A model generated the notes under the pieces. It was not told the origin of the DNA. It did not search any database and saw nothing but the letters and a program-made list of their open reading frames with translations. From the NCBI GenBank assembly GCA_963924565.1, contig OZ004610.1, positions 6,820,001-6,884,000 of the forward strand: a stretch of 64,000 nt of DNA. Reading direction: 5' to 3'. This document shows positions 274 through 31,134 of the stretch, one piece after another (the first letter of the stretch is position 1; each line of letters begins with the position of its first letter). A program made the position numbers and the translations under genes. The stretch comes from Ascidiella aspersa (lineage: Eukaryota).

Positions 274-810
274 ATTTAGTTGTCCGAGTCTGCTCGTGAG
301 GCTCTGTTTCGTGGAATTTTCGGAAAACAATAATTTTATTTCAAATAGGCAATGCAGGCGACAAGGGCAATTTGGATACAAACTATGCATCAAAATGATT
401 GTATAACCAGTAACGCTATGGTATTTACCCGAGTATTGCATATTTACTTATGATAATTTTATTTGACTTGCGAGAAGTGCATTGGATTGTTGGCTAATAA
501 TGAAACTGATCCACAATTTATTTTAATGTACCAAAAGACGAAAAAGTTCATCCATATTTTACGGAGAAAAATATTGTGAAAATTTGACTATATGTTGGAT
601 TTTCTAATAAAACTCAAGTTAAAGCACTCTCTCAATTTGCATGCCTTTTGACCGGATAAAGAACCGCATGCGTCTCGCAAACCGCGGTTTGACCACCCCG
701 TGACATAAGGCAAAAACAGTTAAGAGATGGAAATATCTCCAGGCTGTATATCTATAGGTGTCCAAGTCTGACCCAAACTTAAACTCCGACAAAGAAAGAA
801 TCGGGCTTAC

Positions 811-3565
811 CTGGCGAGAAGAGTGGCAAGGACAGGTTCTCCAGGTCTCCGGCGAAGCTGACCCGGTTCCTACCGCTTCCCGTTCGCCCACTTGACTTCC
901 TGGAAACGCTAAGAACGCCGCGAGGACTTGCAGCTTCGTCGCCGGCCAAGTCCTGCAAGTCAAGTCGGGGCACTTCGTCGGCCGGTGCCTTGCACTCTTT
1001 CTCGGTGATGCGAAAACGACGCAAAGTGGTCTCGACTTGGGCGCCGCGTTTGTTTGGGTCCCGGGCCGAGGCAAGTGGTGATTCATTTCGCCTTCGAGGA
1101 ACGACTGAAGTATCTTTGTCGATTTCGCTATTTGCAAGAAGCTGTTTATCCGGCTGTGGTTTTGGGCGAGCCTCCTTAGATGCGGCAGCAGAACTCTCCC
1201 TTACGCTCTGCAGCGTTTTTTTGGGGCGCTCGTCCGTCAAACGGTGATTCGAAATCGACACAACTTCAAAGCTTGGCCTTCTCTCGCTTCTGTACTTTTC
1301 CAGGCGAGTCGCGAACTGACGTTTCTTGGCCATTGAACGCTGTGGGTAGAAGCTGGCGTCGTCGCTACTATACGAGGTGGACGACTCCGATTCGCTCACC
1401 GTGTCTGTCAAGTTGGCCGAGACGGAGCGCTTCGACGAAGTGCTGGATCTGTAGTAGGGGTGAACCCTTTGTCTGGACTCGGCCTTGGCGGTCTCGCGGC
1501 TACGACTAGGCGATCCTAACATGATCTTTGTTTGACTACGATCTTCTTGCTTCTGCTGTTGTAAGGTTTCAGCTGGAGGCGAATAGAGATCTCGCGGCGA
1601 CAGCAGAGTCTGGAAAATGTCGAGCTGGCGCTTTCGCGTGGCACTTGTGCTGGACAGCAGCTGGTTTGTTTCCGCTACGCGCTGATCCACGTGCCTCGTG
1701 ATCTCGTCCTTGAGGCTGTTCAGCGCCACTTGTAGCTCCGAGTTCGTCCATTTGCTCTCCCCGGTCTTTCCAAGGTCGGGTGACTTTTCTTTTTCCTTTG
1801 TTATTTCTTCCGCAGCAGCAATTGACTCTCGGCTACGGTTCGAATTGGTGGCCTGGACGATGTTCTCGAATTCGGTCAGGCTTCGTTGCAGCTCCTTCAG
1901 GCTCGGGTACAACTCCGAAATCGCGTCATCGTCTGCGTGCTCGCCCTGGATCTTCGTGACGTCACGCAAGGCAACTTCTTTATCGCCCGGCGACAGGGAG
2001 TCGGTTGAAGTAGACGAACGCCCTACTTCTGCTGGCAGCTTCGGCTTGGCTGAGACAGTGGGAAAGACTCGCTGCATATGAGGACGAACAGAGGCTGGAG
2101 GAGCAAAATTGATGCCCAAGTCGCGAGCCACGATCATGATATCGGAAAGCTCCCTGTTCACGTCGTCCACGAGTTGCTTCACTCCTTCGGGTGTGTCTTG
2201 CTCCTCGTGGAAGCAAGCTTCCTCCGAAAATGAGCCGCTGATTTGCTCGATTGCTTGGTGACAAACGCTCTCCTTTGATTCCTTTGATTTTAAAGTTTCT
2301 GTCAACGGTTGCTTGTTTTCGTTGATGTTTTCGGCTGAAGCTTTCGGCTCGGTTTTGTTCATCGCATTTACAGAGTTGGTTTGTTTTAGGCAGGAGGCCG
2401 GAAGTTCCCAGATCACCCTGATCGAGTTGTTGGCCTGGTCGACTTCGTTCACGCAGCTCAAGCTACTACCACCGGCTAAATCCTGCATAAAGCTTTCACA
2501 CAAGGTCAACACATCCTGCAGGTTTCCATCGGACGTTGTAATCGTTTTTTCAACGCTCTTAAGTTGACCCTGTTCAGCAGATAACTCCTCCGGTGCTTTG
2601 TCTTTTTCAGGAGCGTTTTCCCTCTCTGAAAGATGTCCATCGTCGTTGGTATACTGTACAGGCGAATCGCTGCACTCGCCAACGAAGAGATGCGCAGTCG
2701 TGTCGGCGCCAATGTCCACCATGGGCCGCGTTCTAGCCGCGCCACGCGCCCAGAGCTTGCGTTCAATACGCTTCCCGATTGTGATGAGTTTTGCCGATGA
2801 TGTAGTGTCCGATGCGGTGGCATTAGAGCGGCTCTGACGCGCGCCGATGATGACGGATGTCGCGGAACGTGGAGGCCTGGATCCCCGCCTATTTCCAACC
2901 TTGCGTCCAATTACCATAGTCGGAGGTTTCGGTCCACTATTATGCTCTGATTCTTCATCTTGCGTCCTTCTGCTTCCGCACGATTCCCGTGAAGCATCTT
3001 TAGCCTCCTGCTGTTGTTCTCCAGGAGTCTTCCCGGATGGCATGATCGCGATCTCAAAGACTCCGGAGAGCGAGTCGCCGATCGAGGAGGATGAGGTGCG
3101 ATCCTCCAGCGATGAGGATCTATCCACGTAGAGGCTTCCTATAGATGAGGATCCCGCCGCGCTGTGAGCTTCATCGGCGCTCGCGTACGTGGTGGCGATG
3201 GCGCCGAGTCCGGAGCCGGCGGGGTGGGCAGGGGAATCCCCGTTGGCCTTGGGGGCGATATCAAAGATGACGTAATCGCTATCTTCGCTTGTCGACCGCG
3301 GCTCGGCTGTTGTTGTGGAGCGAGTAGGAGGACCTGCCAGCTCGTCGCTTTCGACGCCGCTCTCGCATGCCCAGCTGAAGAAAATGCCGCCCGGCTCGTC
3401 CGACAGTCCGTTGCCTGGCGACGGTGACGTCACGGCGTTGGTGACGTCGATTGTGCTTCGCCCAATGTTGCCGAACTTCTCGACGAGCGCGGTCGGGTGA
3501 GAGCCGAAGACCTTTTCTTCGTCGGACTTTGGAGCGGACTCGCTGCCACTGTTGCTGCAGGTTCC
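811..3565 (-). CDS. Giant uncharacterised protein, exon 8 (2755 nt; low-complexity with coiled-coil-like segments). The gene probably continues left of the window.
   Basis: The 884-aa ORF extends upstream in frame to acceptor cctccag (3566-3568). There is a strong donor CAG|GTAAGC after 811; if it is unused, the frame stops at 779-781. Confidence 0.85.
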
Positions 3566-3572
3566 CTGGAGG

Positions 3573-3844
3573 CAGGACCAGATTAAGGGTAAGCTACTGT
3601 AGGCCTAGGACTATTTACTAGAGAAGGCCTTAATTTTGCAAACCAAGCTACAACAATTAATAAGAATACACATAAAAGGGACTCGACTCAGGCCTTCGTT
3701 TTTGAGCTAAAACTGTACTCTACTGGTATTGGATCTGTATATCACTATCGGTATTATACAATTGTAAGCTAAACAAATTGAGGGCTGAATTTTTCCAGGG
3801 TCTAAGGCTAAAGCCTTAGTAGCCTAATGCTTAATCCGGCTCTG
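3573..3844. mobile_element. hAT-type MITE family A, inserted in the exon-8 splice acceptor
   Basis: TIRs CAGGACCAGATTAAG / CTTAATCCGGCTCTG; perfect 8-bp TSD CCTGGAGG (3565-3572, 3845-3852); second copy at 13622-13887. Confidence 0.9.
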
Positions 3845-4633
3845 CCTGGAGGAAACAGCAAGGTAAAAATTCCAGAAAAAATCACCGCGAGCTAACTTTT
3901 CTAATTATGTCTTGCTTGCATGAAAATCGCAAAGTAAATCAGCAGTTGGAGTAGAAACATCTAACCAAGCTATAGGTAACATTTTTGTACGTTTTCAATA
4001 ACTCTGAAAAATATTTTTAACACAAAAATATATTCAAAATGAACAAAGCGTTATTTGAAATGTATAAAAAATGTTAGTCACTTTTATATGGACTTTAAAA
4101 TTCCAATACACCTAATCACCCAACTTTTATGCTCCGAAATCAACAGATCGGTATGCCTTTTATGAAGGCATACCGTGAACTTTTATATCGGCCTAGTGAT
4201 TTGCCACACCGAATTGAACCGCCAAATCACAATTAATTACGGTTTACAAATTAAAAAATGGTTAAAAGCCTTGATTGTAGTCAGTTAAAAACAGATCTCA
4301 GTTTAGGCAATGGTGATATGGCCGCCCTATCACTTTGCCTGCGTAGATCAGTTGGTATAGGGCCAGGGTACCTGCATAGACTATTTGGGAGTTAAATCTA
4401 ACCATTGGATTTTTTCCCCATATTTACTTTGATTGCATAGAAATAGCCTACTCGATGTGGTCTTTTTAAAGTTAAAAAACCTTTGGGCAACGAAATTCTA
4501 AAAACGATAGCTAACGATTAAAATTAAAGAAAATATTCACAACATTTGACTGCAGGGATGATAACAACGTCATATACGGACGATAAATTTTATAAGTTTA
4601 AACAAATGGTGTCTTATAGGCATGGCAACTTAC

Positions 4634-4745
4634 GGTTTCAGTTTTAATTGGTCCGGCGGAAGGGCGGGGAAACGAAAAGCTGCCTTGAGATGAGACTTTA
4701 GGGAAGGCTTCAACATCTGATGATGAGGTGCCGTGAGTGCTGCTG
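4634..4745 (-). CDS. Giant uncharacterised protein, exon 7 (SSSTHGTSSSDVEAFPK...KTET)
   Basis: Acceptor gtgttctacag followed by tandem CAGCAG (NAGNAG), donor ACC|GTAAGT, 112 nt, phase 2 to 0. Confidence 0.75.
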
Positions 4746-5097
4746 CTGTAGAACACAATCAAGTTAGACAAAAAATAGGTAGCTATTTTGACCTGATGAA
4801 GCATGGTAGTGCGAAAGCTTGTCTAGATTTGAATACAATTTGTCATTAAACGGTGCCTCTTGATTTCTAGATTTTAAATTAGGCAAAAACGAAAACCAAT
4901 AAAGAAGTTACTAAGTAGCAACCATAAGGACGTACAGCACAGCCTTAAAATTACCCCGTTGCCTAATTGCCGACTTAAAAATCTTGTTGGGAAACAAGTG
5001 AAAATAAAGGTCACCCCTTTGTCCAATACCGCTTTAGATTTCAATAATTAACTTTAACAAAAATCTAAAAGATATTTATCAGGTATACTATCTAAAC

Positions 5098-5422
5098 CAG
5101 TGGCTCTCAACCTTTTTTCTTTCGTGGTCCATTTACGTTGCAAAATAATTCTGTGGCCCAATACATTTTTTTGAAAGAAAAAAAAACTGTAAAATAGGCT
5201 TAGAACAAAACACAGCAGAACATATTTCAAAACAGATTATTTATTCAACCGTACATTAGTAATATACTTGCGGCTAACAATAAATTCACATTCCTTTTTA
5301 ATTCCTCACCAAGCCATTATTCCTGTAAAATTTAATATAGTGACACAAATGAAACTAAATCTAGCTTTTTTAAATTGGTCTGTGGCCCACCTCAAATGTT
5401 CTTATGGCCAACTGAACCGATG
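5098..5422. mobile_element. hAT (Charlie/Buster-like) MITE family B
   Basis: CAGTGGCTCTCAACC left end; TSD ATCTAAAC/ATCTAAGC; inverted homolog at 39953-40314. Confidence 0.8.
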
Positions 5423-5880
5423 ATCTAAGCCTAAAGAAACAGGTTACTGCCTAAAGAAGGCAACGTTTTTTAGTTCTTACAAATTTGTTTTATAGGAGCC
5501 CTGTGGGGTTAATCTTTCAGTCGAAAATAATTAAATTGAACATGACGCCTTTGTTTTCGTTAAAGGTGTTCAGACTTTATCTCAGTTTCACAACTGTCGG
5601 GCCAACAGCAGGTTTCTTAAGTCTACTTGTCTAATGACGTCAATTTAAGACCTTGGTCCACGCGAACCAAAAAAAATTTAGGGGGTCGGCGTAAAAACAA
5701 AAGGTGAAGAACCCCTGTTGGATAGTAACGTTAAATTCTCGTTGAGCTACGTTCCGCCAGCAAGAAAAGACAAACAAGTTAAGCAATTGAGTTTCACATT
5801 ACAATTCCTACGCCGCCGTAATAGGCCTACTGTATCACGACTTTTAATTTCAAACTGTTAAATTTGTTGTTATTTTAAAT

Positions 5881-6194
5881 CAGTAGTTCCCAACCTTTTT
5901 GGGCTTGCGGCACCCTACAGAAATTATAAATAGTTCGCGGCACTCTTGCTCGTATTTTTGCTGAGTGGTTAACTAACGTTACAATAACGAGATTGAAACA
6001 GCACATTAACTGTGCAACAAGGTTGAAAAAAACTTTTTAATTTTTGGCACTTTTATCGTACTCAAATTTTTTTATCACGAAGCTCACCAAAAGAGCAAAA
6101 ATGGGAATCCTAAAGAGCTTGAAATATCTCTCAGCCCGTTGAGCGTTAAAAATGGCACCCTAGAGAGCCGCGGCTCCCCGGTTGAGAACCATTG
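5881..6194. mobile_element. hAT (Charlie-like) MITE
   Basis: CAGTAGTTCCCAACC ... GGTTGAGAACCATTG termini; TSD not preserved. Confidence 0.7.
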
Positions 6195-6272
6195 GTATAC
6201 TATAAAGTAATAAAGACCTGAAAGGCAATTTGGTGAATACTGTTTTAAATTAATAAAAATAAAAAGAACTAC

Positions 6273-9200
6273 CTTGCACTTCTCTCCTGGCGGGAGTAAG
6301 AGGAGCCGTCCTCGTCGCTCGAACTAGTGGTGGCTCCCTCGTCCGATGCGACATCCGAAGAACAAGAGGAGGAGGAAGTGGACCTCCACTGCTCCAAGCA
6401 GTCCTCATCGAACGTCACCGACCTCCGATCGACGTAAGCCGTGACGCGTCGCTTCCCCTGATTGAAAAGGCGCCTCACAAAGGCACGAAACGCCCGAGGG
6501 AGTTTGGTCTTCTTGGAACCTCCGGATCGCAAAACGCTAGGAGCCGAGATCGACTGGCTCACTCCGTAGTGCCTCCGCGGGCTCAGGGTGGTCCTAACTC
6601 CTCTCGCGGACTCGCCAGGAGTCGGACCCGATTCTTGGTTGTCTTCCGAAGAGGGTCCGGCACCTTCTTCGCTTTCGGAAGCTTCATTTCCATCCATTCG
6701 CGATTCGCTGGCACTGTTTCGCATTGATCTTTGCGAGCTTTCACCCTTTTTCAGTCCTCTGCCGTCCGGCTGCGAGTTCTGCGAAGTTGCACTCCCGGAT
6801 TCGGACGGCCTCTTCCCGCTATGCACAGACTGCTTTGACGACCTCCGCGACGACTTGGCCCCCGATTCCTTGCTTCCCGACGCGCTCAGCTCATTGGAAC
6901 TCCTTTGCGACCCAGAAGCGCCCGGCTTTTCATCAGCCAGGCTTTCGTCAACCATCTCGTCAACCTTGCTGGTCATTTCGTCCAACAGAAGCCGCACACT
7001 TTCATCTATAGCGGAATCAAACTCGTTCAGGCCTTTCTCCTGAATTCGAGATGTGAAAGAGGCACTGCCTCCAGGCTGCTGAAGGGTGGTGATATCTCTG
7101 ATGCTCGTGTTCAGCGTAGAGACCAGGAACTGTTTTTTCCTTGCGCCGTTAGCCACCTTTAAGTCTGACGTGCCTGCTCTGCTGTTGCTCGACCTCGCCA
7201 CGCCAGGCTCTACTTGCTTATCACCTTCGCTCTCTAATTGTGGCGAGTTGGCAGCGATGTATCCCTCGATGACCACGATACGGCGACCGCCAATGATGCA
7301 GCCCGTCGCGAACATTCCAGCGCCGTACTCTACAGCAGTGCGGCGAATTTCGACGTCCAGGTAGCGTTCTAGCTGCAACTCGGAAGCAATATCCAGCCAT
7401 GAGGACTCTATTGAATCGTTGACGAGGAACTTTGCGACGCCGTTGAAGAGCGCGCTCTTCCATAGCTCGTTGCTGGTGGCTCGCACCTTGCCTTCGACTT
7501 TTGAAGGGAAAAGCCGTTTGAACATTGTTCCGCCTTCGTACATGGCAAAGTCGACGAGGCGCCCGGCCATTGGTTCGATCGCCGCTTTTTCGTAAAGCGA
7601 CGGGAAGAAGGGCTTGAAGTTCTGGCGGAGTCGCGGGCACTTGCGGCAGCTCGACGCCCAGTCGTTCACCTCCTTTGCCGCGTTGCGCTCTTTTACAATG
7701 TCCTTGACGTCCCTGAGGGTCACCAGCCTCTCCCGCTGCTCACCTACGTCGTCCTCTTCCGTTTTCACGTCCACGTCCTCCATCTTCTTGTACTTGAGCG
7801 TCGGCTTGGTGGACGGCCCGCCCAACTTCGCTTCCATCTCATCTTGATCCTTATCCGCCTCCTCCCTGCTCCGGAAGCGGAGGCTGCGCATCAGGAGCCC
7901 GTCTCCGCGAAGATAGAGCATGGCGGCTTCGGTTCGAGTCCTGGACTTTCTATCGTCTTCTTTATTGTCGCCTCGCCTCCTGACTTCGTTGTCGTCGGAG
8001 TCGATAACGGATGGCATCTGCTCATCTAGACTCCTCTCCCTTTCATCCGGATCCCTCCTGCTCCACCACGTGCTTACCTGAGAGAGGTTAGTGGAGGAGT
8101 AGTCCATCGCTCCTAGTCGATGCAGGCCTGGAGGAAAGCGCGGCGCCTCTTCTCTTTGCTGTTCTCCGAAAGAGTCCAACCTCCGGCTGGATGCCGACGA
8201 GATCGAGTACATCATTTTTTCGCTGTCGTTGTCGTCCGTAGTGCTTGGGTTTTGTCCGTGTAATTTCACGGCTGACTGGACTGGCTTTTCAAGCAGCAGT
8301 TTGCTGACAGTTTTGCCCCCTTGCTTCGCTCGGTTCTCATTGGAATGCGAAATCGACAGATCAGGGTTGCTGATCGAGCCCGGAAACCCTGGAACCTCAC
8401 TTGTTTTTCGCTCTAGTTCTCCCGACAGCGACGACTTTGACCTTACCGTCTTTGTAGCGGGGTGAGACGATGATCTGATGCTACTTTTATTCGAGGTTTG
8501 AGCAGTTTGCCCACTCTTGGCTTGCGACTGGGACGATTTTGACTTTGAGGTTGCGGCTACGGACGAGGCTGAAGTCTTAGTTGACTTTAAGCTAGTTTTC
8601 TGGGAGCTGGCTGCGCTTCTCTTACTCTTACTTTCGGACTGTTTGTCAGTGTCGAGCGAACCGGAAGACTTCAACTTGGTTGTGATGCTTTTCACCGAGC
8701 CTTTTCCAGATGGCAATGAAGACTGGCGCGTCTCGCTTCTTTCGGATAAAACGCTGCTTTTCTGACTGCCACTGCCGGGCGCGGACAGCTGCGCGGAGCC
8801 GGGAGAGTCGTACAAGCGCGTATCTTCAACGCGATTCGAAGCATTGGTCCCTGACCACATTGATGCTTTGCTCGACTCAATATCTTCAACTCCCTCTGGT
8901 TGGTCTTCTGCTTCGGATTGGTTCAGCGACTCCGAGCCGCTATCTTGCTGTTCTTCGTTTTCGCTTTGGTCGGACGCAAGTTTCGAGTCGTACTCGTCCG
9001 GCGCGACCTCATCGTATTCGCCGCTGACGGTTGCGCTTTCCTCCTGCGCGGCGTCGTACGATTGCTCCGAACGCGGACCAGTTCTAATGGCCGGCACTGA
9101 AGGTGGTTTTCGGCTTGTTCGCCTTGCAGGAACAGAGCCTTGCCTTTTGGCCTTTGTCGGTTGCTTTGGCTCGGAGTCCCTGGTCCTTCCAATTCGTATC

Positions 9201-11090
9201 TTCGAACGCGAGTGTTCGCGGAGTGAGGGCACTTGGCTCTTGGCTGAAAGCGACTGGTCTTTGGCTGAAAATGACTGACTCATGCCTGAGAGCGAGCGTT
9301 TCTTGGCTGAAAACGACTGAGTCTTGGCTGGAGTTAGCTGTGCTGAATGCTCTTTTAACGATTTCCGGAGGTCGCGCTCGCTCAGAGCCGAGTAAATGCG
9401 GTGCTGATTGCAAGACACCTGCGACAGACTCCTGGCCATCTCGCGCATCTCATTTGTGCAAGTCGGTCGGTCGTAGATCGGCAGGGAGTGGGACATATCG
9501 GCCGAGAGCGCTGGACGCAGCGGCCCGGCGCTGTGCCGAAGTCGGAATCTGGCGGCAACGGCTTCGCGACTTTCCGACGCAGTGTCTTCGGACACTTTCG
9601 GAAGCGCGAACGTGACGTGGCGTGGCGACAAAGCCGTTGGTTCTGGGGTTGAAACGTTTGCCGCCTTAGCTTTGGAGCGACGACCGATGCAGACTAGCGA
9701 GCGACGATTTGAAGAAAGCTTATTGTGGTTGATCCAAAGCGCTCCTTGCTTGGCGGGCTTCTGTTTTTTCGCAGGCGTTGCCTTTTTTGTGCTTTTGCCA
9801 TCGCTTCTGCCGGCGCTGACAGTCGGAAAGCCGCTGTAGGAGGTTACCATAGACGTAGATTGCTCTTCTTCTGACACCTCCTCCTCTTCGCTCGCGTCAC
9901 TTGAGGAAATCGAGTCTTCCTCACTTGACATGTCCACGTTTATATCCGACTCATCGCTCAAGGAAGTCACATTGACATCAGAGTCTTCGCTTGACGAGTC
10001 CACTGTAACATCCGCGCCCTTACTTAAAGAGGAGTCGATTTTGGTATCCGAATATTTGCTTGACGATTCTGAACTATCCTCCGAGTCTTCTTCGCTCGAG
10101 GAATCTTCGTCATCGTCATCATAAAAAGCCAGATCCTCCATCTGAGCCACTTCGTCGTAAATGTGTTCTTCCTCTCTGTTTCGACCCTTTCCAATTTCGA
10201 CCCAGCCGCTCTCCGTTTGCGACAGAGAAAAGGAGCTGCTGTCGCTGTACTGCGACCAACTATCGCTTCCGGCGCAGTAATCATTGTCGAGTGCTACAAG
10301 AGACGATCGCAGGTCAGGACGCGATCCCATCTTGAGCTTGCGCATCCGTTCTTTGATGTGACGCGTCTCCCTTCTGGTTTTCCGCTCGTCGGCGAGGTCC
10401 TCCAGGGTGAAGTCCCCGCGCGCGTACTTGGCCATCGGACCTTTCAAACCAGCAGCCTCCCTTCGCGCAGCCTTCCAGTGGTCCAGCATCTCGTCGGTGT
10501 CCATCTGGATGCCGACTCGCATTCGTCTGTGCTTGTCGCTCATTTTGAGCTGCGCTCGGAACTCGTTTACCTTGGCGCCGGGAAGCCGCATCAAAAACCT
10601 CCCCTTGGCCGGCTCTTTCCCTAAGGCGCGGGGATCGGTGACTGGGCGCCTCCGTCCGATCACGAGGGCATCCGACGAGTTCCACTTACTCATATCGATG
10701 CCGCTGTCCTCTGAGGACGATTCAGAAGCGCGCTCAGCTCCGTAAGGCTCTGCGTTCTCCTCGTACGCGTTCGTCTTCTTAACGTCGAACATCTCCTTCA
10801 CTTGAACGCTCATCCTCCGGAATCGGTTCGCGAATCGCTCGCGGAACGTCTGCGGGTTGAACTCTTCATAAACGTGCTCTTTAGCCTGAATGACCTCGCC
10901 GTCCGCTCCTGGCATGCGAAGCTCCGAGTGGTGGATCATGTCAGACGGGATCGACATCGCGGAGTCGCCGGAGCCAATCCACCGAGACTTTCCTCCTTTA
11001 CCGTCCTCCGATTCCTGTCCATTATCATCTTCCTCCTCCACGCCATGCCACTCACCGTCGTCACGCAATTTGCCCAACACCACCGCTTTT
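6273..11090 (-). CDS. Giant uncharacterised protein, exon 6 (4818 nt; Ser/acidic/basic low-complexity, YDEV motifs, possible folded segment about 7250-7655)
   Basis: 1604-aa ORF; acceptor gttttcgcag at 11091-11093; donor AG|GTAGTT; phase 2 to 2. Confidence 0.88.
9232..9330 (-). repeat. Coding 21-bp degenerate repeat (QSFSAK-like heptapeptides)
   Basis: Recurrent (C/T)TTGGCTGAAA; translation KTQSFSAKKRSLSGMSQSFSAKDQSLSAK. Confidence 0.7.
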
Positions 11091-11863
11091 CTGCGAAAAC
11101 GGAGATAAAGTTTGGGGCTGATTGGCTAGTTTTTTCAACCTGGGCCCAGAATTAAAATGTTGCCAAGGGCCGGAAAAGATTGTCATCTTAGGAAAACAAG
11201 GTCATTTATTGTTCTACAATTTGCCTAACACCACCGCTTTCCTGCGTAAATGAAAATACGTTTAAGGGCTAATCGGCTGTAAAAAAATTTGTCTGAAAAA
11301 AAACAAGGTCATTAAATGGTATTTTTACCACTTCCTACATTTCACTTATTTCAGTTCAATATTTTTTTTTTCAATAAATTGTCGTTTGCTGCGATTCAAA
11401 TTCGGACAACTAAAGATCTTGATGCTGCTGTAAATTTAAATCTAAATCCGGATGCGGTTTCTCAATTACATAGAACTGGTTTGTTTGTTTGCGACTTTAT
11501 GCAACCATTAGCATTTTTTGCTTGATTGTTACCACCCGGAGTGTATTTAAAACTGATAGCCATATTTACCTTTATTTAGCGACTATATATAATTGTAATA
11601 TTTATCCCTGAAAACATTGTTAGAGATTTAATTCAAAAACGTGGCTTTAGAAAGATATTGCCTATTCGTTTGTTGTTAGTTAAAAATAAGAGTTTTTTAC
11701 TTATTTAGCCGGAGTGTGTGACTTAAATACCAGAAACAGACATACTACACTCCTTTTAGCGATTGCATGTAAATCTTTTTCGCACCAAAATGGTATTTTG
11801 AAGCAAGAAATGGAGCACTCCGCAAAATAGCATTTGGCAATATACAACATTAAAGGTAATTAC

Positions 11864-12303
11864 TTGTAGGTGCCGTCCGGGTTGTTGACTTTTCCGATCA
11901 GGACAATGTGGTCATTCACGTCCACGTCGCGCCCGACCGTGGTCCTGTACTTGGGCTTCTTGAAGCTCACACCGCTCTTCTTGCGTCCCTTGATCTTGCT
12001 CTTCCACGAGAAACTTCCTTTGCCGAGACTGTCCTCTTTTCCGCTTTCCCCGCCCTCCAAACCACTCGCTCTCCCTTCACCAAAGGCGCTGTTCTGAGAA
12101 ACCTGGTTATTGTTGTTCCATGCTTCTCCAGGACCTTGAAATGCTCCTGGACCTTGAAATCCTCCAGGAACCTGATTTCCCCCAGGACCTTGAAGTCCTC
12201 CATGACCTTGATTTCCTCCTGGACCTTGATTTCCTCCAGGACCTTGAAGTCTCTCTGCGCCTTCGTGCAGTTCGGAAGTGCCTTGTTTCCATATGGAGTT
12301 GTT
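11864..12303 (-). CDS. Giant uncharacterised protein, exon 5 (QGPGG hexapeptide repeats)
   Basis: Acceptor ccatcgcag, donor AA|GTAATT, 440 nt, phase 0 to 2. Translates without stops as NNSIWKQG...LQGPGGNQGPGG...NPDGTYK. Confidence 0.75.
12127..12249 (-). repeat. Coding 18-bp tandem repeat x7 (xQGPGG)
   Basis: Repeated TCCTCC(A/T)GGACCTTGA(A/T) units on the plus strand. Confidence 0.9.
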
Positions 12304-12917
12304 CTGCGATGGGTGGTATATATATCTATGCGTATAATAAACAGCTAACGCCTTACATAAAGGGTCGATATAGATCTATATAAACAATTTTACCGTTATG
12401 AAAAAGCTTTATTCAAGACGCAGTTTTTTTGGAAGAGGATAAGGGACAAGGGTGATATTTGTAGATATATAGCCTTAAGAACAAAAGAGCTGTAGCATCG
12501 TCTCGTCTTTTAATTTTTTAAATCTCAACAAACTGAAAAAAAATATTCAAACTGCGTAAAATCATCGCATTGAGTGCAGGGTTCACCAAATTACTCGAAA
12601 GACAGCTGGTTGTAAGTAGCGAACAGGCTTTTTATTAAAATAATAAACGTTTGGTGCATGAAAACTAAGGATAAGGAACACAGTTAAAGCGTCGATTTAG
12701 GAAAATTGATATTTTTGCGCTAGCGCGGTTTCTCAAAAAAGCAAAAATTTGACTTCTTTTATGTGAAAAAAATAAAATTTAAACTCTTTTCTGTAAAAAA
12801 AAATTGAATTTTTTTTCATGAGTTTTATGAGGTTATGGGATAAGATCTGATCCTAATCAGGGCTCGGTTTTACTAAACAAGCAAACAAGGCTGGTACAAA
12901 AAAATACAAAAACTAAC

Positions 12918-13045
12918 CTTGGTCAGGTTTTGCTCGCTTGATGCTCCCAGTGGTCCGACGCGCGACGGTCTCCTGCCAAACTCAGATTTTCTGCCAAAGT
13001 CTAACTTGTTATCCGAAGGTACCGCCCTGGTGTGCCACGATCGAA
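12918..13045 (-). CDS. Giant uncharacterised protein, exon 4 (VRSWHTRAV...NLTK)
   Basis: Acceptor cctcatttttcag, donor AAG|GTTAGT, 128 nt, phase 1 to 0. Confidence 0.75.
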
Positions 13046-13245
13046 CTGAAAAATGAGGCCAATTAAACACGTTCGCTTTTTCAAGACGCTATTAGACTGC
13101 AATGCATTCCCTATTGCTATAAAAGTGATGGACTCGAACAAAATAAAACTCGTTATTCATTGGCCACCCAAAACTTGTCCTGCAATCGATTACCTAAATG
13201 TTGCGAACGATTCGATAAATTCAGCATAAATCTGTTTTCCTTCTA

Positions 13246-13606
13246 CAGGGTTGCAAAGTCGGTTAAAAATACCCCGAGTCCGAGTCCGGCCAAATGTGCG
13301 ATTTTGTCGAGTCGCGAGTCTGGCTCCGACTCTGCCACCTGTATTCCGCCAATTTACGAAACCAAAATAAGGTAAATATTAAAAAAGAAGTTGATATTTT
13401 AATACATGGTTGGAAAATTTCACACAACATATGCTATTCCACCGGAACAATTCACAGTCTTTGTAATTAGTTTCGAAATTGGGGACTGCGCAATTGCACG
13501 TCAGACTCGGGACTCGGTTCTAGTCTTAGTCGAGTCCCGAGTCCGACTCCAGCAAAACAAACCGGCTCCGTCGAGTCTCAAGTCCAACTCCGACTACGCA
13601 GCCCTG
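13246..13606. mobile_element. hAT-type MITE with GAGTCC/GGACTC subterminal repeats
   Basis: TIRs CAGGGTTGCAAAGTCGG / CCGACTACGCAGCCCTG; degenerate TSD TCCTTCTA/TCCTACTG; related decayed copy at about 23751-24128. Confidence 0.75.
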
Positions 13607-13621
13607 TCCTACTGCCACTGC

Positions 13622-13887
13622 CAGGCCCGGATTAAGGGTACTGTAGGCCTAAGGCTGTTTACTAGAGAAGGGCCTAACTTTGAAAACCAAGGTTAAAAAA
13701 AAACGGACACACAAGGCACATATTGACTCGACTCAGTCATTCGTTTTTAAGCAAAAGTGTACTGTACTGTACTGGATCTGTATCACTATAAGCATTATAA
13801 AAATTTAACCTTAAAAAAAATTAAGAGCCGAATTTTTCCAGGGCCTAAGGCTATAGTCCTAGTAGCCTAATAGTTAATCCGGCACTG
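13622..13887. mobile_element. hAT-type MITE family A, copy 2
   Basis: TIRs CAGGCCCGGATTAAG / TTAATCCGGCACTG; internal sequence colinear with 3573-3844. Confidence 0.88.
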
Positions 13888-13930
13888 CCTGCTGCACTAA
13901 CCCACGTTAGCCATGTCCTACTGTACTGAC

Positions 13931-14139
13931 CCAAGTTCGGCTTGTCCTCCGGCCCGCCCAGCACCCCGGCGTGTTCGCTCTTCCTATTGTGCTTCAGGGT
14001 GGGCGCCAGGATGTGCTTGAGATTGCCGAACTTTTGTCTCTTTCTCAAGGTGGCCAGCGCCGACTCGGAGTGCCTCTGTGGAGTTCCCTTCTTGTTTGGT
14101 GGCAGATCGACCTCTTTCACTCCAATTGGGAGCTGGAGG
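13931..14139 (-). CDS. Giant uncharacterised protein, exon 3 (NLQLPIGVKEVDLPP...KPNL)
   Basis: Acceptor aaacag, donor G|GTCAGT, 209 nt, phase 2 to 1; GC-rich island in AT-rich flanks. Confidence 0.7.
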
Positions 14140-14852
14140 CTGTTTTTTTAAATTATGCGCGGTGCGTTAGAGCAAATGGTGTCTGATTCTATCGCAGACT
14201 TGTATTTCTATTTATTAAAATTTATGACTTTGGTTGAAGTTGTTTTGCAAAACATTTGACTCGAAACGAGACTTGGAAACTAGATTTATTTTAGCTTTTT
14301 AAAATTAAAATTGTGGCGAATCTGGTGGTGTTCGTTCATGTGTAGCGAAGCGTGAATTTGCATTTTTCGTATTGCGCTGCTGTACGTTTATAATCGTGTT
14401 GCGCTAACCCCCTAACTCCATCATATTATGTCGCAACAACTTAACAAAGCAACAGCCGCTTTAGGGTAGTGGTTTAGAAATAAAAATAATTCCTCGTTAT
14501 AGTGAGGACAGGCTTGTGAGGACAGGCTTGCACGCAACTATCTTGCGTGCTATAGTTCTGACTTCACATCTGCAATTTACCAGAAAATGCAAGTTTATCT
14601 AATAGACGATTTTCAATCTCCCAATCCTAAAGAGATCATTTTATCTATATCTATACGAGCTTTATATGAGTACGACGTAATTGCATTTGCCTGGTCGTTT
14701 ACAAATGCACCTCGTGAAATTCAAACGGTTAGCCAACTTAAGCAACGGATCTATACAACCCGAAACTTTTCCAAATTTTTAAAAGCAAGATGAGCGTCGT
14801 AATTTCCGACAATTGCCAACCAACCAGCGTGACAAAAACAGCACAGACTTAC

Positions 14853-15093
14853 TTGAATTGATTCTTGAAGTTCTCGGCGGCAAATTCTCCCAGTCCGGTC
14901 GTGGAGGTGGCGACTGCCGTGCTGCGCTGAAGCTTCTTGCAAGGCTGCTTCGTCGCCTTCTTGTGCTGGCAAACCTCGGGCAGGCTGGATCGGTTACTGT
15001 CTTGGCGGAACGCACCTTTCCTAACGATGCCCGAAACGGTCGGAACCGACTTCCAGTTGTTTTGCCGCGCGTTATCGAACAAGGTACGCTTAT
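14853..15093 (-). CDS. Giant uncharacterised protein, exon 2 (DKRTLFDNARQNNWK...NFKNQF)
   Basis: Acceptor ttcgtttttag, donor AA|GTAAGT, 241 nt, phase 1 to 2, open frame. Confidence 0.75.
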
Positions 15094-15886
15094 CTAAAAA
15101 CGAACCAGCGGAGAGCAATTATTTTTCAGACTGTTGTCAAACTTAAAATACAATCATTCGATGTGATACCCAGGGTGGTGATTTTTTTTCTAAAAATGGC
15201 ATCATTAATCTCTTGGTTAGCCAAGAGTGTTGTTGACCTGCCCCCACCCACTGCCCTCGTGACATATTTATTTTAAACAAGAAGCTGGCCTAAATGTTGA
15301 ACACCCATATCGAAGGGGCTACCACTAAAGAAAGGTTGAGAACCACCGGTATAAAGATTGAATGTTAAAGTCTACAATTATAAAACATTGCTGCGTTTTT
15401 CTTTTTAGCATAACGGCTGAATCCTTGGACATTACAAAGAAGATTTAGAAAATGGTAAACAATATTTAACAAAAAATTTTGCCAAACCATATATTAAAAT
15501 GGAATATTTTAACGGACTAAAGCAATGCGTTGTGATTTGTGACAGCCACTGGCGCATAATTTTAAATAATCCTTATCTATTGGTGACGTCATACCCTTAA
15601 AACAATTGTAGGGTAGAAACTGAACTAAACAATTCTCAATAATTTAGAATAAATATCAAAGTACATACAGAAGTAGGTGGTTTTTGTAATCGTTTGAGAT
15701 AAATCTTTTTATTCGTCTTCAACATATGTGATTAAAAATTAAGTCAAAACTTTCATAAAGTGCAACCTTTTTCCGTAAAGGCTTCGATAATTTTTTTTAC
15801 GTCTAACTAAAATCTTTATCTAACCCGCCAAAATGGCTATTTTTTGTTTTTTTTAGCCTAGAGTTACTCAATCGAAAGTAGCCCAC

Positions 15887-16712
15887 CTGAGTATAGTGTT
15901 GAACCAGCATTGATTTGACTCGTGTCGGCGCTAGAGACACCTTTTTTAGTTTTTATTTCCTTATCTGGATGCTTACTGGAGCTAGGGTTCGTACCTGATT
16001 TGCTGTCGGCAGTTTTCTTTCCACAAGACGCAGACTGAGCTGCATGGGTGTGGCTAGAAACATTTTTCCCAGCACTTTCGTCGATACTTGTAATTTCACA
16101 TTGTTGAACATTGCTTTTCTTTCGAGAAAGCCGAGAGTGCTGTTCAGCCGCTGCCCTAGATGCGTCCAAACCGGCACTTCTATGGCTGCCAAAGATTCCC
16201 GAAAGCTGCAGTAAACTTGCGTCCATGGCAGATTTGCTGAGCATTGCGGAAAGCTGAGACCGCGACTTTTCAACATGTTGGTCAGAGTTGGGGTCCGTGC
16301 CCAGTCTCCCTGGGCTACCTTTTTGTCCATGAAAACGAGAATGTGATGCGCCCGGGACCCTTGAAACTGATTTTGCGATACTGCTTAAGTCGCCGGTGTA
16401 TCCGCTGTGTTCTCCAGCTGTGGCAAGTGAAGACGCCTTTCCAGCACTGCTACCAGCAACTGATTTGGCCACCGAAGCTTTCGGCGCGAAATTAACTCGC
16501 GCTTGATAGCGTTCAGCAAAGTCGCGCGCCTTTCTGGCCTTGCGTTTTCTGCTGGCCGACCTGGGCGTCAAGTGAGCCAGTCCGGAATAAGATGACGACG
16601 ATGAAGAGTGGACGACATCGAGAAATGCTGACGAGCGCCTTCTGTGCGTTTTACGGCGGAACGGCAGGCTCTTCCCGCTTTTTCCCGCCGTCTTTTTACC
16701 GCCTTCTGGCAT
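15887..16712 (-). CDS. Giant uncharacterised low-complexity protein, coding exon 1 (MPEGGKKTAGK..., basic, Ser/Ala-rich, RVNF motif)
   Basis: ATG at 16712 opens a 282-aa ORF. Donor CAG|GTGGGC after 15887 (phase 1) is the one that fits the next exon; the alternative GA|GTAACT at 15868 gives an immediate stop. Confidence 0.7.
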
Positions 16713-18262
16713 TTTCCTACGCTACGGTTTCATAATATTCTTCTATCTAAGTAGTTTATAACTTTTTTTTACCTAAAATATAATTTTTTTTGTACAACAA
16801 CAATGGAAGTTTGTTACACAACAATGCGCTTACTTATGGTTTTGCTTCATTGATTTCCATGCGTGTCAATTACAAATCAGCTGATTTACTAACTTGACTT
16901 AACAGCTTAAAATGTTTGTTGTTATGTTTTATTTTTAGTACACATTGCTGTCTTGAGTTTGGACGCTGTGAAAGTTTTAGTATAAATTCAAAAATGGGCG
17001 CTGGTCTAGAATCCTACCACATTTATTTTAACAGTAAGGAAACAAGGTGTCAAAGTTGAAATTGCAAGGAAGCCATAAATATCTAGAAATAAATAAAATA
17101 ATTAGAGTTGGACCGCCCATACGGGCCATACCCAAATGCTAACTCCATCCCATACCCAAATATTGTTAGCAATACAAAATCCTTGGATGAAAATTAGTAG
17201 GATTCCAGACCAGCTCCCCAAAAAAGACTGGTCAGTCTAAATCAGAAATACATTCGACTTAACACTTATGAGTCATTTGTTAAAATACTTGTAACGTCCT
17301 AAAACTTGACTGAAATATTGCAATAATTTTTATGTTCCAAAACTGTTCACATATATTACAGTATATTTAGTTTTATTGGGTCCTTGGTCTTAAAACAATG
17401 GGATTTTAGATCATTTTGCTTCAAAGGTCTTATTGTGTGTTACCATTTGGAGCTATAGCTTAAAATAGGGCGCAGATTGGCCTGTTTTATAGGCGGTGCA
17501 CATCCATGATCATTTAAAACAGTTTATGTTCATATCTAAATTATTAAAAGCAAAACCTTAATTAAAAAAATATAGGAGGTTTTTAGGTTGTGTGGGTCGT
17601 GTCATGGTAGGATTCTATACCTCTTTTGTGGATAAAACCTTTATGTCGAATCTGAAAACTGTACGCCGAGATCACTGCTAAAACTGTTAAGAAATGTAGA
17701 TGGGCACTTGCACTCTACAAGTGCCTTGTTTTGTTTTTGTGGTCAGCAAACTGTGGGATGCGAGTTTCTTATTGAAATTTTTTTAGTGGGCCGCGAGTTA
17801 CTTTTTTGAAGGTATGTAAACACATAATTTTTTGCGCTTCACACGGATATTTTTCGTTTTATGATATGTTTTACATTATGCCATGGCAGTGTTTTGGGAA
17901 TCAAGGCGCATCTTAAAAACAAATACCCTGAATCCGCCACTGTTTTCGTAGTACTTTTATGTAGTGGGTCTCAATAGCTCTGAAAAGAGTGCTTTGGGCC
18001 ATGACAAAAAAAATTGCCGACTACTGATCTTATCAATGCAGGCTAAAAAAATCCAATCAACTTGTTTGTTTTTCTACAGCTTGACTTGTTATGCACTAAA
18101 AATTGTTTTAAATATTGCTGTAGTATTTTCTGTTGACACCTTTTACTAAATAACTCATTTTACGGTTTGCCCAAACTTTGCCTTTTACCAGACTTTATTT
18201 TGCTAGGTTTTGTTCAAAAAACAAGCTTGATAGTAAGATTGGCAACAAGCATAAATACCACA
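16713..18262. promoter_or_regulatory. Head-to-head intergenic region / probable bidirectional promoter (giant gene and COG5)
   Basis: Divergent start codons 1.55 kb apart; TSSs are not visible from sequence alone. Confidence 0.5.
16996..17218. mobile_element. MITE-like inverted-repeat element in the divergent promoter region
   Basis: About 22-bp inverted repeats GGGCGCTGGTCTAGAATCCTAC / GTAGGATTCCAGACCAGCTCCC. Confidence 0.6.
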
Positions 18263-19143: not shown

Positions 19144-19174
19144 TGAAACTATATGGCAACTTTTACTTTGTCAG

Positions 19175-19314
19175 AAACTCTGTCGGATTTTTTGGACGAC
19201 GACTTTGAAGTTCAAGATTATGCAACTAGTGTCATCCAGAATGCAGCAATCTCGCATAGACTTGCACAACTAGTGGATGGCATCAGTATGCTGGATAAAG
19301 AACTGCAATCACAG
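19175..19314 (+). CDS. COG5: COG5 exon 2 (ETLSDFLDDDFEVQDY...LDKELQSQ)
   Basis: Matches the COG5 N-terminal pattern (DFDV..Y...L..GIS.LD.EL..Q); AG/GT boundaries; 140 nt. Confidence 0.93.
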
Positions 19315-19785
19315 GTTTGTTGCAAATATTTATATTCATACAAGTGATTTAATCTATGTTTGTACTGTTTGTGAATCGGATATAAATTCTTTTGTGCTAA
19401 AAATTAATCGCTACTAAGTCTTCAAAATTCGTTAAAAATTATGTTATAAACTGACATGCTGCAGAGGAAATGTACTAATTTGTCAAAATTAGTTCTATAA
19501 AATATTACCCCTGTGCATGACTTCAGATGTATGCAAAGGGCTTCATATATAAGCGTAAATGCTGTTAACTTGTTAAAATTATTATTTAAATTTATATAAT
19601 TTTATTTTCCCTAAACAATTAAGTAAGATAGAAGCTTATTGTTGCAGATTACAAAGGTATGTCCATCTACTACATTTAAAATATTTTGCATTTTTGTTTC
19701 TTGCTTTTCTATTAAAACATTTTCATACAATTAGTTTGTCAAACAGATTTTATGTACAGCTTTCTTAACGATTGGACTGTTTTAG

Positions 19786-25228: not shown

Positions 25229-26276
25229 CTACACGTTCTCGACCGTTTCGATGAAAGTCGAGCGGCTGTAGGTTCCCTGCTCCTTCAGTTGCTGGTTTTG
25301 ATTGTTTCCCAGGAGCTTCTCACTGACGTCGCGCGCAGACGAGCTGCAGCTGTCCGTGCACGTGTTGACGCGACATACAGCGTCGCCGCGCCTGCACTTG
25401 GGCGCCTGAGGCGACGCGCGACGTCCGCGGCCCCAAGGCGAGCTCCAGACCGCCGAGATGCGAACGCGGGCTCGACGCTCGAGCCGCGGCCCCGATTTGG
25501 CGCAATACACAACTCGAATGTCCTTGCGGATCTTCTCGCGCGAGAAACTGTACAGCGCCGGGTTGATAGTGCACGAAGCGACGCCCAGAACGAGACTCCA
25601 AAGGAAGGCAGCGTTCCACGCCGCGCCGCCGCTTTCAACTGGCGTTTCAAGGCGCAAACCGCGCACTGATGTATCTTTAAAGCTGCATGTTGCCGCACAG
25701 AGGCGCCGCTCGTCCGGCCCGGCCAAGTACTTGGCGACTGGAAGTGCGTGAAACGGCGTCCAGCACGTTACAAAGGTGAGCAGAATGAGGACGACCATCT
25801 TGCGCAGGTGCCGCGTCCGACGGCGCTTCTCGCGTATCTTGGCCGCAACCATTCGCTTCAGCGCAAGCACAACGGTTATGGAGAGAGCCACGGACGCAAA
25901 GTCGGTCTTGGCTTCGGCGTGATGCTCTTCCGTTCCGCCGGAATCCGGCTCCTGTTTTCCCGCGGCGCAGATTAAACCGTTTGCCGCCTTGTCGTCGACC
26001 TTTACGCCGCTGAGCTTAGGCGAAGGCGAAGGCTCGGCCTGCTTGACTTGCACAATTTGCCGCGTTTTATTGTTGTTAGCGCGCTCGATCCGCGGCGAGC
26101 TTTCCGATATCGTGGTGATGACGGTCGCGTCCTTGTCTTCTCCTCCTGCTCTTGCTCCTACTCCATCTTCTCCTCTGCTCTTCATCCATCCTCCGCAGCA
26201 CTTGAGCACGAGGCTCTTCTTCTGCTGGTCGCGCGTCATCTTGAGCGAGTGCTGCTCCCGGATCTTTTTGGCCTGT
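25229..26276 (-). CDS. GPR22: GPR22-like GPCR exon 4 (long ICL3, TM6 CWTP, TM7 NPALY, C-tail); total about 628 aa
   Basis: SITVVLALKRMV resembles GPR22 SVSVIIALRRAV; TFVTCWTP; INPALYSFSREK resembles HPLLYAFTRQK. Acceptor tttctcgcag; stop TAG at 25229-25231. Confidence 0.9.
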
Positions 26277-30077: not shown

Positions 30078-30633
30078 CTGTGAAAAAAGTTTTAGTTTAA
30101 CTGAAAAAAAAACTTTACGTGATTTAGACGCAAACCTTACAGAACTGCGAAACCTCCGGCGAAATTATGATGTGATTTGGAAAGTTTCGAGATAACCCAG
30201 TGCCGTAAGGCTTTTTGCCTGCATTTTGCAGGTTTGTGAAGATTTGCAAAATTGTTTCAAAAAACATAATTTTCCAATAAAGGTTTGGTTGCGTTTGTTA
30301 TAGTTGACTATTTGGTAGTCTTGTAGAAAAATCCCTTTTATTGGCGTTGTCGTAAAAGTTTGACTGTCAAATATATTATATCAAAGGAGTTTGGATATAG
30401 CATTAGTTGGTTGAAGAAAAAACACTTTTTTGTTCAGCTATGACATTAGTTTGATTATGTCGCAACATTCACTCCTTGTTTTCTCGTACTTTATCAACAC
30501 CAACCGTTCACTGGGTTATTAGAACCACTGAAAAATCGCCGTTACACGATTGGCCGAAACCACGTGACGAGGGGCTTTCAAGCGTGACGCCGCCCTTTTC
30601 AAACCAAAACAAAAACAAAAAGTCGTGTCGAAC

Positions 30634-31134
30634 CTGGAAAGCGATCTGCAGCGACAAGTCGAACTTGTTGAGCGAGCACAGGTCCTTGGCGCACCTCGCC
30701 GCGCACGTGACGTTGTCCAAACCAATGACGTCACCAGAATTGATGACGTCACCCAGCCTGGATCGACTCTTGTCAGCCAGCGCCGCCACAGGCACCACCT
30801 GCCATTCCTCGCTTGCCGCTGTATCGTAGTTGAACATAAGCAAGAGAGGAGCTACTGTGGCTAGTACAGAGACACTCCACACTATGGCGATGGCGTAGGC
30901 GGTTCTGCCCTTGACGAAAAATCGCTTCAGGGCTCGCAGGCTCACGTCGGCCCGGTCCAGGGCCAGCAGCGCCGTCCCGGCCACGCTTGCAATGGCGCAG
31001 AAAATGAGCAGGCCACGATTTAGGAAGCAAAGGTTGTTGGCCTGTTGCGCCGATCCGAAGCTGAGCAGTTGCGTGACCAGGGTAATGGGCAAGGCTACGC
31101 CGCACAGGATAATATCGATCACAGCCAGGTTAAC
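30634..31134 (-). CDS. GPR22: GPR22-like GPCR exon 2 (TM2-TM4, ECL2)
   Basis: VNLAVIDIILC..LP, LDRADVSL (GPR22 has LDRYDISV), TM4 Trp; 501 nt, phase 0 to 0, AG/GT boundaries. Confidence 0.9.

Follow-up and report, generated by a model that had tools for sequence, protein, structure and literature searches.

A giant, mostly disordered tunicate protein encoded next to COG5 in Ascidiella aspersa: one gene of at least 11 exons, probably ending in a membrane anchor

In this report, we focus on a giant gene at the beginning of a stretch of 64,000 nucleotides from the sea squirt Ascidiella aspersa (assembly GCA_963924565.1, contig OZ004610.1, positions 6,820,001 to 6,884,000 of the forward strand). 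This whole stretch is called the window below, and positions are those of the window unless another reference is given. It is very probable that eight minus-strand open reading frames (ORFs) lying between 16712 and 811 are the exons of a single, real gene, whose product would be mostly disordered and about 4,000 residues long. The best explanation of what we observe is that this gene starts at 16712, spans about 24.8 kb, comprises at least 11 exons, runs beyond the window's first base and encodes about 3,930-4,100 residues. Sequence comparison identifies its product as the orthologue of the proteins of Ciona LOC100180955 and Styela LOC120327567. With moderate confidence, and leaving room for the other readings discussed below, we take it to be a tunicate-specific, tail-anchored cytoplasmic docking scaffold.

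A previous, sequence-only reading of the window had proposed eight minus-strand exons of given lengths. We scanned for open stretches of those lengths bounded by AG and GT, which gave one consistent chain, and checked it exon by exon. The lengths, the AG/GT flanks on all eight exons, the bases carried from exon 1 to exon 8 (1-2-1-0-2-2-0) and a chained frame without a stop in any exon were all reproduced. The chain totals 9529 nt, which is 3176 codons plus one base, and the five codons that are split by introns encode D, N, V, K and S. Also present are the peptide quoted in that reading and the three long ORFs of the minus strand that it had joined, namely one of 282 aa (15864-16712), one of 1604 aa (6269-11083) and one of 884 aa (779-3433). 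The exact splice junctions of the chain are to be taken as predicted ones.

All eight exons are read from the minus strand. Exon 1 (16712-15887, 826 nt) opens with an ATG at 16712, with an in-frame stop immediately upstream, and encodes a basic, hydrophilic and Ser-rich N-terminus in which no signal peptide was found. A TATAAA at 16755-16760 on the same strand, about 45 nt 5' of this ATG, may act as a core promoter element. Exon 2 (15093-14853, 241 nt) is followed by exon 3 (14139-13931, 209 nt), which holds a block matching residues 431-476 of the Styela protein, by exon 4 (13045-12918, 128 nt) and by exon 5 (12303-11864, 440 nt), which contains an 18-nt tandem repeat of the GPGGNQ type at 12126-12251 and closes on the conserved end TTVGRDVDVNDHIVLIGKVNNPDGTY. 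Exon 6 (11090-6273, 4818 nt) holds 1605 full codons. The Ser-rich exon 7 (4745-4634, 112 nt) is needed for exons 6 and 8 to share one frame. Finally, exon 8 (3565-811, 2755 nt) ends in CAG/GTAAGC and hence is not the last exon; the intron that starts from this donor at 811 occupies positions 1-810 and continues out of the window. The GPGGNQ-type repeat is in frame and coding, and so are a 21-nt repeat of the SFSAK type in exon 6 (9240-9330) and a 30-nt repeat of the FSQRGGQE type in exon 10, which lies beyond the window.

The composition of these exons is that of coding sequence. They have a GC content of 0.51-0.585, whereas that of the seven introns is 0.32-0.43, and even for the short exon 7 it is 0.514 against 0.356. 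We trained a codon table on exons 6 and 8 only and scored the small exons against intron windows of equal length. The predicted frame is the top sense frame in all six small exons (1, 2, 3, 4, 5 and 7), with positive scores throughout (for instance +21.3 for exon 1, +8.8 for exon 2, +4.7 for exon 4 and +11.6 for exon 7); with this table, antisense frames score above exons 4 and 5. Intron windows practically never reach the codon score of the exon they are compared with: none of 851 do so for exon 1, none of 2000 for each of exons 2, 3, 5 and 7, and 6 of 2000 for exon 4.

Expression was followed in one RNA-seq run (X4, from 2026, carrying the same species label and read to about 6%), which was mapped together with DNA runs at a likeness of 90 on positions 10990-16989, a region covering introns 1-5. 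Outside repeats, its reads are all oriented alike, the first mate mapping to the plus strand; in most stranded libraries, this corresponds to RNA from the minus strand. In 200-nt bins, the RNA depth across exon 1 is 13.6, 8.95, 6.53, 11.4 and 6.92, and it is 0.75 and 0 in the non-repeat bins of intron 1. It is 3.2 and 4.0 in exon 2, 0 and 0.5 in intron 2, 3.9 in exon 3, 0.26 and 1.43 in exon 4, 0 in intron 4, 0.49, 1.05 and 0 in exon 5, and 0 in intron 5 and on the first 101 nt of exon 6. Since this one-stranded cover sits on exon bins, exons 1 to 5 are transcribed from one strand. The depth is also 0 at 16790-16989, 5' of exon 1, and transcription probably starts between 16713 and 16789. High-copy repeats are present in introns 1-3 (13190-13989, 14278-14307 and 15645-15678), with a DNA contig depth in the thousands against about 56-82 elsewhere, and the RNA reads found there belong to both strands, with loose ends where a repeat begins or stops. 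The contigs that another run, X3 (organism B), gave on this stretch do not exceed 186 nt and are almost the same in sequence, so that they carry no comparative signal.

The gene is not alone of its kind. When residues 1050-1420 of exon 6 were compared by phmmer with a whole library of 1.84 billion representative proteins, 10 proteins matched with E<=0.001, among them 7 with E<=1e-10; their lengths are 1321-3888 aa. Two of the 10 are named, Ciona intestinalis LOC100180955 (XP_026693921.1, 3075 aa) and Styela clava LOC120327567 (XP_077970308.1 / XP_039249822.2, 3888/3889 aa), both as "uncharacterized protein", and the remaining 8 are ORFs without a name, located on contigs from ENA, JGI or Logan. 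Over a region of about 330 residues, the match to Ciona has an E-value of 1.1e-28 (38% identity) and that to Styela one of 7.3e-18 (34% identity). In this search, relatives were seen in tunicates only, in agreement with the lineage-specific character that had been proposed for the protein. It can no longer be called unrecognised, however, since RefSeq models of both orthologues exist, uncharacterised as they are. A literature search for LOC100180955 returned no paper, and it is on this result and on the "uncharacterized" names that we call the family not described. Word-index searches, run within a length filter, found no protein with exon 6 residues 1000-1400 and only the query itself with the C-terminal 439 residues of Styela.

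We ran BLAST with each exon separately, and the matches to the two named relatives form collinear islands. In Styela, residues 431-476 correspond to exon 3, 607-635 to the end of exon 5, 754-1021 to the N-terminal part of exon 6, 1655-2001 to the domain of exon 6 and 2542-2573 to the first codons of exon 8. In Ciona, residues 458-844 correspond to the exon 6 domain, 1468-1565 to the start of exon 8 and 1791-1923 to residues 261-399 of exon 8. The conserved peptide starts at the first codon of exon 8, at 3565. Outside the islands, the sequences are not alignable. The Ciona model begins at the equivalent of exon 6 residue 533 and has a different, weakly hydrophobic C-terminus, so that XP_026693921.1 may be incomplete at both ends. 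Both giants resemble the Ascidiella protein in lacking any Pfam domain and in carrying the YDxV/P and IG[RK] motifs described below, while only Styela shares with it a hydrophobic C-terminus.

A metagenome contig from a further tunicate (L006, which encodes the relative P0002) carries the blocks of exons 3, 5, 6 and 8 in the same order, and its exon 3 block sits behind an acceptor of matching phase. The intron between exons 5 and 6 has the same position and phase in this contig and in the window, within a common peptide PDG(T/S)Y-K-K-(A/T)V(V/I)LG: L006 reads PDGSY, two carried bases, GTAAGT...CAG, one base and KTVILG, and the window reads PDGTY, AA/GTAATT...CAG/A and KAVVLG. As far as sequence comparison goes, this conservation is the strongest indirect support for any junction of the chain. 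Base composition, codon usage, the one-stranded RNA cover on exons 1-5 and the collinear relatives all support the proposal that the separate ORFs form a single giant gene.

The gene was followed into the 10 kb that precede the window (G000:C4:6810001-6820000, termed L002; a window coordinate is the L002 coordinate minus 10000), and the exons found there are again on the minus strand. Exon 9 (L002 9428-9235, 194 nt) has an acceptor, TCTCCTAG, at 9428 and a GTGAGT donor after 9235; it takes the base carried by exon 8, giving GGG as the junction codon, and ends in phase 0. It encodes the block IVVSPRS...SVQLSVPVLREYYEDI, and its positions L002 9357-9244 match Ciona 2451-2492 with 57-63% identity and Styela 3513-3548 with 43% identity. 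Exon 10 (L002 6586-4750, 1837 nt) lies within an open frame of 625 codons, with an acceptor ...TTTCTCCACAG at 6586 and a donor CAG/GTGAGT after 4750. Its product is predicted to be disordered and includes PEPEPE and a 10-residue repeat of the FSQRGGQE type (L002 5355-5515); the codon score is +92.3, the GC content 0.59, and there is a weak collinear match to Ciona 2555-2567 (E 0.85). The last exon (L002 2149-1885) ends in ...ALVRVIAVATILYLVFHEDIFRLDGRPPM and a stop, with an AATAAA 4 nt past it, and encodes the predicted tail anchor. Its positions 1977-1900 align with the Styela C-terminus (3859-3887, E 6e-4), and in both species the stop comes 4 residues after a shared Asp-Gly. The phases demand at least one further exon between exon 10 and the last exon, and we therefore present this link as a putative one. 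Over the 11 exons, the in-frame residues amount to 3934, against 3888 in Styela.

The hydrophobic segment encoded by the last exon is at the center of our functional reading. Measured over 17 residues, the hydropathy of this segment, ALVRVIAVATILYLVFH, is 2.10, the maximum of the protein, the next segment reaching 1.42. The C-terminal segment of Styela scores 1.95, which is likewise the maximum of its protein, and lies at a matching distance from the stop. In Ascidiella, the segment is followed by a C-terminal tail of 13 residues, HEDIFRLDGRPPM, which ends in DGRPPM; the tail of Styela ends in DGDFPT. Judged on its hydropathy and position, this segment is probably a membrane anchor. The earlier statement that the protein has neither a transmembrane helix nor a signal peptide holds for the part encoded in the window, in which no segment of transmembrane grade is found and whose N-terminus has no signal peptide, but it does not extend to the hydrophobic segment predicted beyond the window.

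Most of the remaining chain appears to be disordered. By the charge-hydropathy rule, 2775 of 3418 windows of 51 residues (81%) fall on the disordered side, and Ser makes up 14.5% of the residues, in agreement with the previous description of a mostly disordered protein. The sole long stretch predicted to be ordered lies in exon 6 (window centres 1159-1293), inside a conserved region that covers exon-6 residues 970-1300 (7190-8182, minus strand). This region is composed of block A, with DYSSTNxSxVxxWW and YLRGDGLL, and block B, with FxPFFPxLYE followed by helix-like segments and ending in GRRxxI; an alignment of 11 sequences (A1) has 17 invariant columns. The profile built from it matches exon 6 only in the 308.6-Mb genome, so that the region is single copy. 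A Cys-rich insert of the form HCxQ...C.DP.C...C...W.C is found in 9 of the 10 relatives (A1 columns about 160-260), between blocks A and B; unlike most relatives, the Ascidiella protein lacks it, as does P0005.

No known domain could be assigned. The three big ORFs gave nothing in Pfam at E<=1 and five relatives gave nothing either; the Styela protein (P0003) together with the downstream exons gave only DUF4845 (E 0.76), and the 11 members of A1, searched at E<=10, gave three families with one member each, all of which we take as noise. Searches of the PDB by sequence and by profile returned matches at chance level (E 0.59-1.8), and a search of the ESM Atlas with P0002 returned no usable match. 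The claim that the protein has no recognisable domain thus stands as regards Pfam, but it has to make room for the conserved stretch of some 330 residues, which looks folded.

Two short motifs stand out from the disordered chain when their numbers are judged against shuffles. The first one, YD.[VP], is present 4 times in the Ascidiella protein where 0.5 would be expected (z 5.1), 6 times against 0.6 in Styela and twice against 0.5 in Ciona. The second one, IG[RK], occurs 8 times against 1.0 expected, 7 against 1.6 and 3 against 0.8, respectively, and in most relatives its context is hydrophobic-x-I-G-R-x-R-P. Among the YD.[VP] sites, EEHIYDEVA (10145-10171, minus strand; exon-6 residues 307-315) is a candidate phosphotyrosine docking site that is identical to the Y474 motif of Tir from enteropathogenic Escherichia coli (EPEC). 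It is conserved in Styela (KEHIYDEVAGD), in P0004 (SHIYDEVASD) and in P0002; HIYDEVA itself is present in three species (Ascidiella, Styela and P0004), with a near-variant HDYDEVA in a fourth. The other sites are IYDRP (Y539), EYDEVAP (Y692) and LYDSP (Y760), all within 8801-9475 on the minus strand, and Y692 aligns with GYDTVAG of Ciona. In 3 of the 10 relatives (P0006, P0008 and P0009), the available ORF contains no YD.[VP].

According to PMC4238058, the Tir peptide EEHIpYDEVAADP binds the SH2 domain of Nck at 40 nM, and the nephrin motifs bind it at 370 nM; the Tir peptide motif is also listed in PMC2999339. By analogy, the YDxV/P sites of the giant protein could be phosphorylated and bind SH2 domains. 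The genome holds at least 35 SH2 matches. Six of these loci were looked at in translation, and they appear to be Grb2, Crk, Csk, an Shc-like gene, a tyrosine kinase and an SLP-76-like gene. In particular, the locus at G000:C4:6520337-6520567 reads as Grb2-like, with SH3-SH2 and a further SH3 exon, and that at G000:C7:5781686-5781907 as Crk-like, with SH2-SH3.

If these elements are put together, the single C-terminal hydrophobic segment and its 13-residue tail would hold the protein in an ER-type (endoplasmic reticulum) or outer nuclear membrane, while the remaining chain, of which about 81% is predicted to be disordered, would lie on the cytoplasmic side and offer docking sites of several kinds. 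The acidic YDxV/YDxP tyrosines, once phosphorylated, would attract Nck/Crk-type adaptors through their SH2 domains, the repeated hydrophobic-x-I-G-[RK]-x-R-P motif would bind a second partner, and the conserved region of some 330 residues, probably helical, would be the sole folded module. The exon chain with its coding character, the one-stranded expression of exons 1-5, the orthology and the enrichment and conservation of the motifs are observed; the insertion into the membrane, the phosphorylation and every binding partner are predictions of this model.

Such an arrangement has parallels in known systems. The nephrin tail and EPEC Tir likewise carry several acidic YDxV/YDxP sites on a disordered, membrane-tethered chain, and the substrate domain of p130Cas is a comparable phosphotyrosine docking array. 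Unlike these, the giant protein would be held by a C-terminal tail anchor instead of having a type I or hairpin topology; it is 10-30 times longer and shows no sequence relation to them outside the motifs. Giantin is a large tail-anchored scaffold with a coiled-coil rod. Both proteins would have more than 3000 cytoplasmic residues and one C-terminal transmembrane domain, but the Ascidiella protein is disordered and Ser-rich/charged, and no homology was found between them. By its sequence, the protein belongs to a tunicate family without a name that is already modelled in RefSeq. It would work in the manner of the nephrin, Tir or Cas docking arrays and of large tail-anchored scaffolds, but has no sequence relationship with any of them.

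Several observations weigh against the docking-scaffold reading or the gene model on which it is built. At the protein's end, the hydrophobic segment contains an Arg, and the uninterrupted core that follows it has no more than 12 residues; the putative tail anchor is known from two species, the Ciona RefSeq model ending otherwise with a hydropathy of 1.01; and a word-index protein search with the last exon, within the length filter, gave no candidates. When AG..GT frames were enumerated for a single exon that would link exon 10 to the last exon, none was found, the top candidate scoring at most +5.3 bits. In the 6 SH2 loci that were read in translation, out of 35 matches, we did not recognise an orthologue of Nck. 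It is conceivable, if unlikely, that the product is a soluble scaffold or condensate protein, the transcript ending at 779-781 or after exon 10 and the hydrophobic exon belonging to another isoform or another gene, with a function that comes from the Ser-rich, acidic and basic blocks and the RGG-/GQ-type repeats. The proportion of disordered windows, the Ser content and the low-complexity tandem repeats (GPGGNQ in exon 5, SFSAK in exon 6 and FSQRGGQE in exon 10) would all suit such a protein, as would the putative nature of the link between exon 10 and the last exon. In addition, the frame of exon 8 can be read on for 10 codons to a stop at 779-781, with ATTAAA/AATAAA 250-440 nt beyond, so that a read-through isoform without the anchor is possible. 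However, CAG/GTAAGC at 811 is a strong donor whose phase fits exon 9, both RefSeq orthologues extend through the exon 9 block (57-63% identity with Ciona), and Styela has the matching hydrophobic C-terminus. As the gene continues past 811 and probably ends in a membrane anchor, a free soluble condensate protein is the less likely outcome; the previous proposal had been a lineage-specific scaffold or condensate protein.

The chain might also be cut at its other end, namely into two or more genes, a small 5' gene (exon 1 to exon 4 or 5) being followed by a large 3' gene whose start would lie in exon 6 or ahead of it, and the two being joined here by a chance match of frames; we regard this as improbable. 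The per-base RNA cover falls about 15-fold, from about 10.8 in exon 1 to about 0.7 in exon 5, and then to 0 on the first 101 nt of exon 6, so that a shorter 5' transcript may dominate in the X4 sample. Moreover, the sequence joints listed (15 of 38) are all repeat joints of DNA contigs, without an RNA junction read among them. As regards the gene model in general, exons 1, 2, 4 and 7 have no significant homology in BLAST, the best relevant E-value of exon 1 against the Styela N-terminus being 11. The differences between RNA and assembly in exons 1-3 number 13 among those listed, leaving aside the repeat rows (13251-13859 and 15662-15663) and those in intron 1 (15774, 15786 and 15816); 6 are synonymous and 7 non-synonymous, a weakly non-random pattern (P about 0.08-0.10), and 7 of the 13 sit at third codon positions (P about 0.10), which is compatible with a weakly constrained coding sequence and proves little. 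An older RefSeq release of Styela did contain a pair of models (953 aa and 2916 aa), but these were split inside the equivalent of exon 6 and not between exons 5 and 6, and the current model (3888/3889 aa) merges them. Against a division also speak the peptide, position and phase of the exon 5/6 junction, which are kept in L006, the blocks of exons 3 and 5, which are collinear inside one Styela model, and the exon bins, which are all read from one strand. Another minor rival concerns the conserved region, in which the helix LxPLAERIVxFAVxEG of block B could dock the regulatory-subunit dimer of protein kinase A (PKA), making the protein an A-kinase anchoring protein (AKAP). Hydrophobic pairs at i, i+1, i+4, i+5, i+8 and i+9 are present in most A1 rows. 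Nevertheless, AKAPs are defined, in PMC12083921, by an amphipathic helix of 14-18 residues, and the helix here, bounded by Pro and Gly, has only about 12-13, being too short for more than a marginal probability. Pfam gave no match to any AKAP family, the AKAP_110 profile being uninformative here as it matched nowhere, and a literature search for AKAP with Ciona or ascidian found nothing relevant. The motif itself, which resembles AKAP peptides, is degenerate.

If the tail anchor is accepted, the question becomes to which membrane system the protein belongs. Nesprins, KASH5 and the plant WIP/SINE proteins likewise combine a giant cytoplasmic arm, a C-terminal transmembrane domain and a short tail with Pro-Pro-X or x-Pro-Thr at its end, and the Ascidiella protein could be a KASH-like protein of the outer nuclear membrane, its tail (PPM, or FPT in Styela) binding SUN and its arm linking the nucleus to actin through adaptor docking. 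We consider this rather unlikely. According to Zhou et al. 2014 (PMC4050730), a putative KASH domain is a transmembrane domain, then 9-40 residues, then a C-terminal pattern that is [PATHQL]PP[QTVFILM] in animals. The Ascidiella end agrees with two of these three rules, as the tail comes directly after the predicted transmembrane domain at the protein's end and its 13 residues are within 9-40, but not with the four-residue rule, RPPM being wrong at position 1 and the DFPT of Styela at positions 1 and 2. Since both ends miss the pattern, we do not file the gene as KASH. No spectrin repeats or CH domains were seen either, and Pfam searches of the last exon and of Styela P0003 at E<=10 gave no match to the KASH family (PF10541). 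The tail is also much shorter than the 30 residues or so that are usual for animal KASH domains. A related idea, to which we give a low probability, is that the docking scaffold is a giant nuclear-envelope/ER tether of the tunicates' own, with a minimal KASH-like end, whose Tir/nephrin-type sites assemble Nck/Crk-driven actin networks on the organelle. Such a tether would be a LINC-type (linker of nucleoskeleton and cytoskeleton) or organelle-actin linker in which short motifs replace spectrin repeats.

The neighbor of the giant gene in the window is COG5, as previously noted. Its first coding exon is at 19153-19344 on the plus strand, where COG5_N is matched with an E-value of 2.8e-5 and 24.8 bits, below the cut-off of 31.2 because only one exon was scanned. 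COG5_C is matched at 55628-55834 (plus strand, 37.8 bits), above its cut-off, and COG5 extends past the window's end. The two genes are arranged head-to-head, with 2440 bp between the start of COG5 and the ATG of the giant gene. Two pieces of rhodopsin-family G-protein-coupled receptors (7tm_1), on the minus strand at 25232-26239 (E 4.5e-8) and 30511-31122 (E 7.2e-5), are nested in COG5, as they lie antisense between its first exon (19153) and the COG5_C exon (55628).

The gene model is corrected here to at least 11 exons over 24.8 kb, the ORFs not being separate genes. Should the docking-scaffold reading be false, a long gene would still have been correctly spotted, with relatives that are present in RefSeq without a name. 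If it is true, sea squirts have a lineage-restricted, membrane-anchored mega-scaffold in which strong conservation is limited to one module without a name and a few short docking motifs. This would also be a natural chordate case of a high-affinity Nck site, letter-identical to that of Tir, placed on a very long disordered tether. As Ciona is experimentally tractable, the family would be well suited to the study of how membrane motif arrays may organise actin or condensates.

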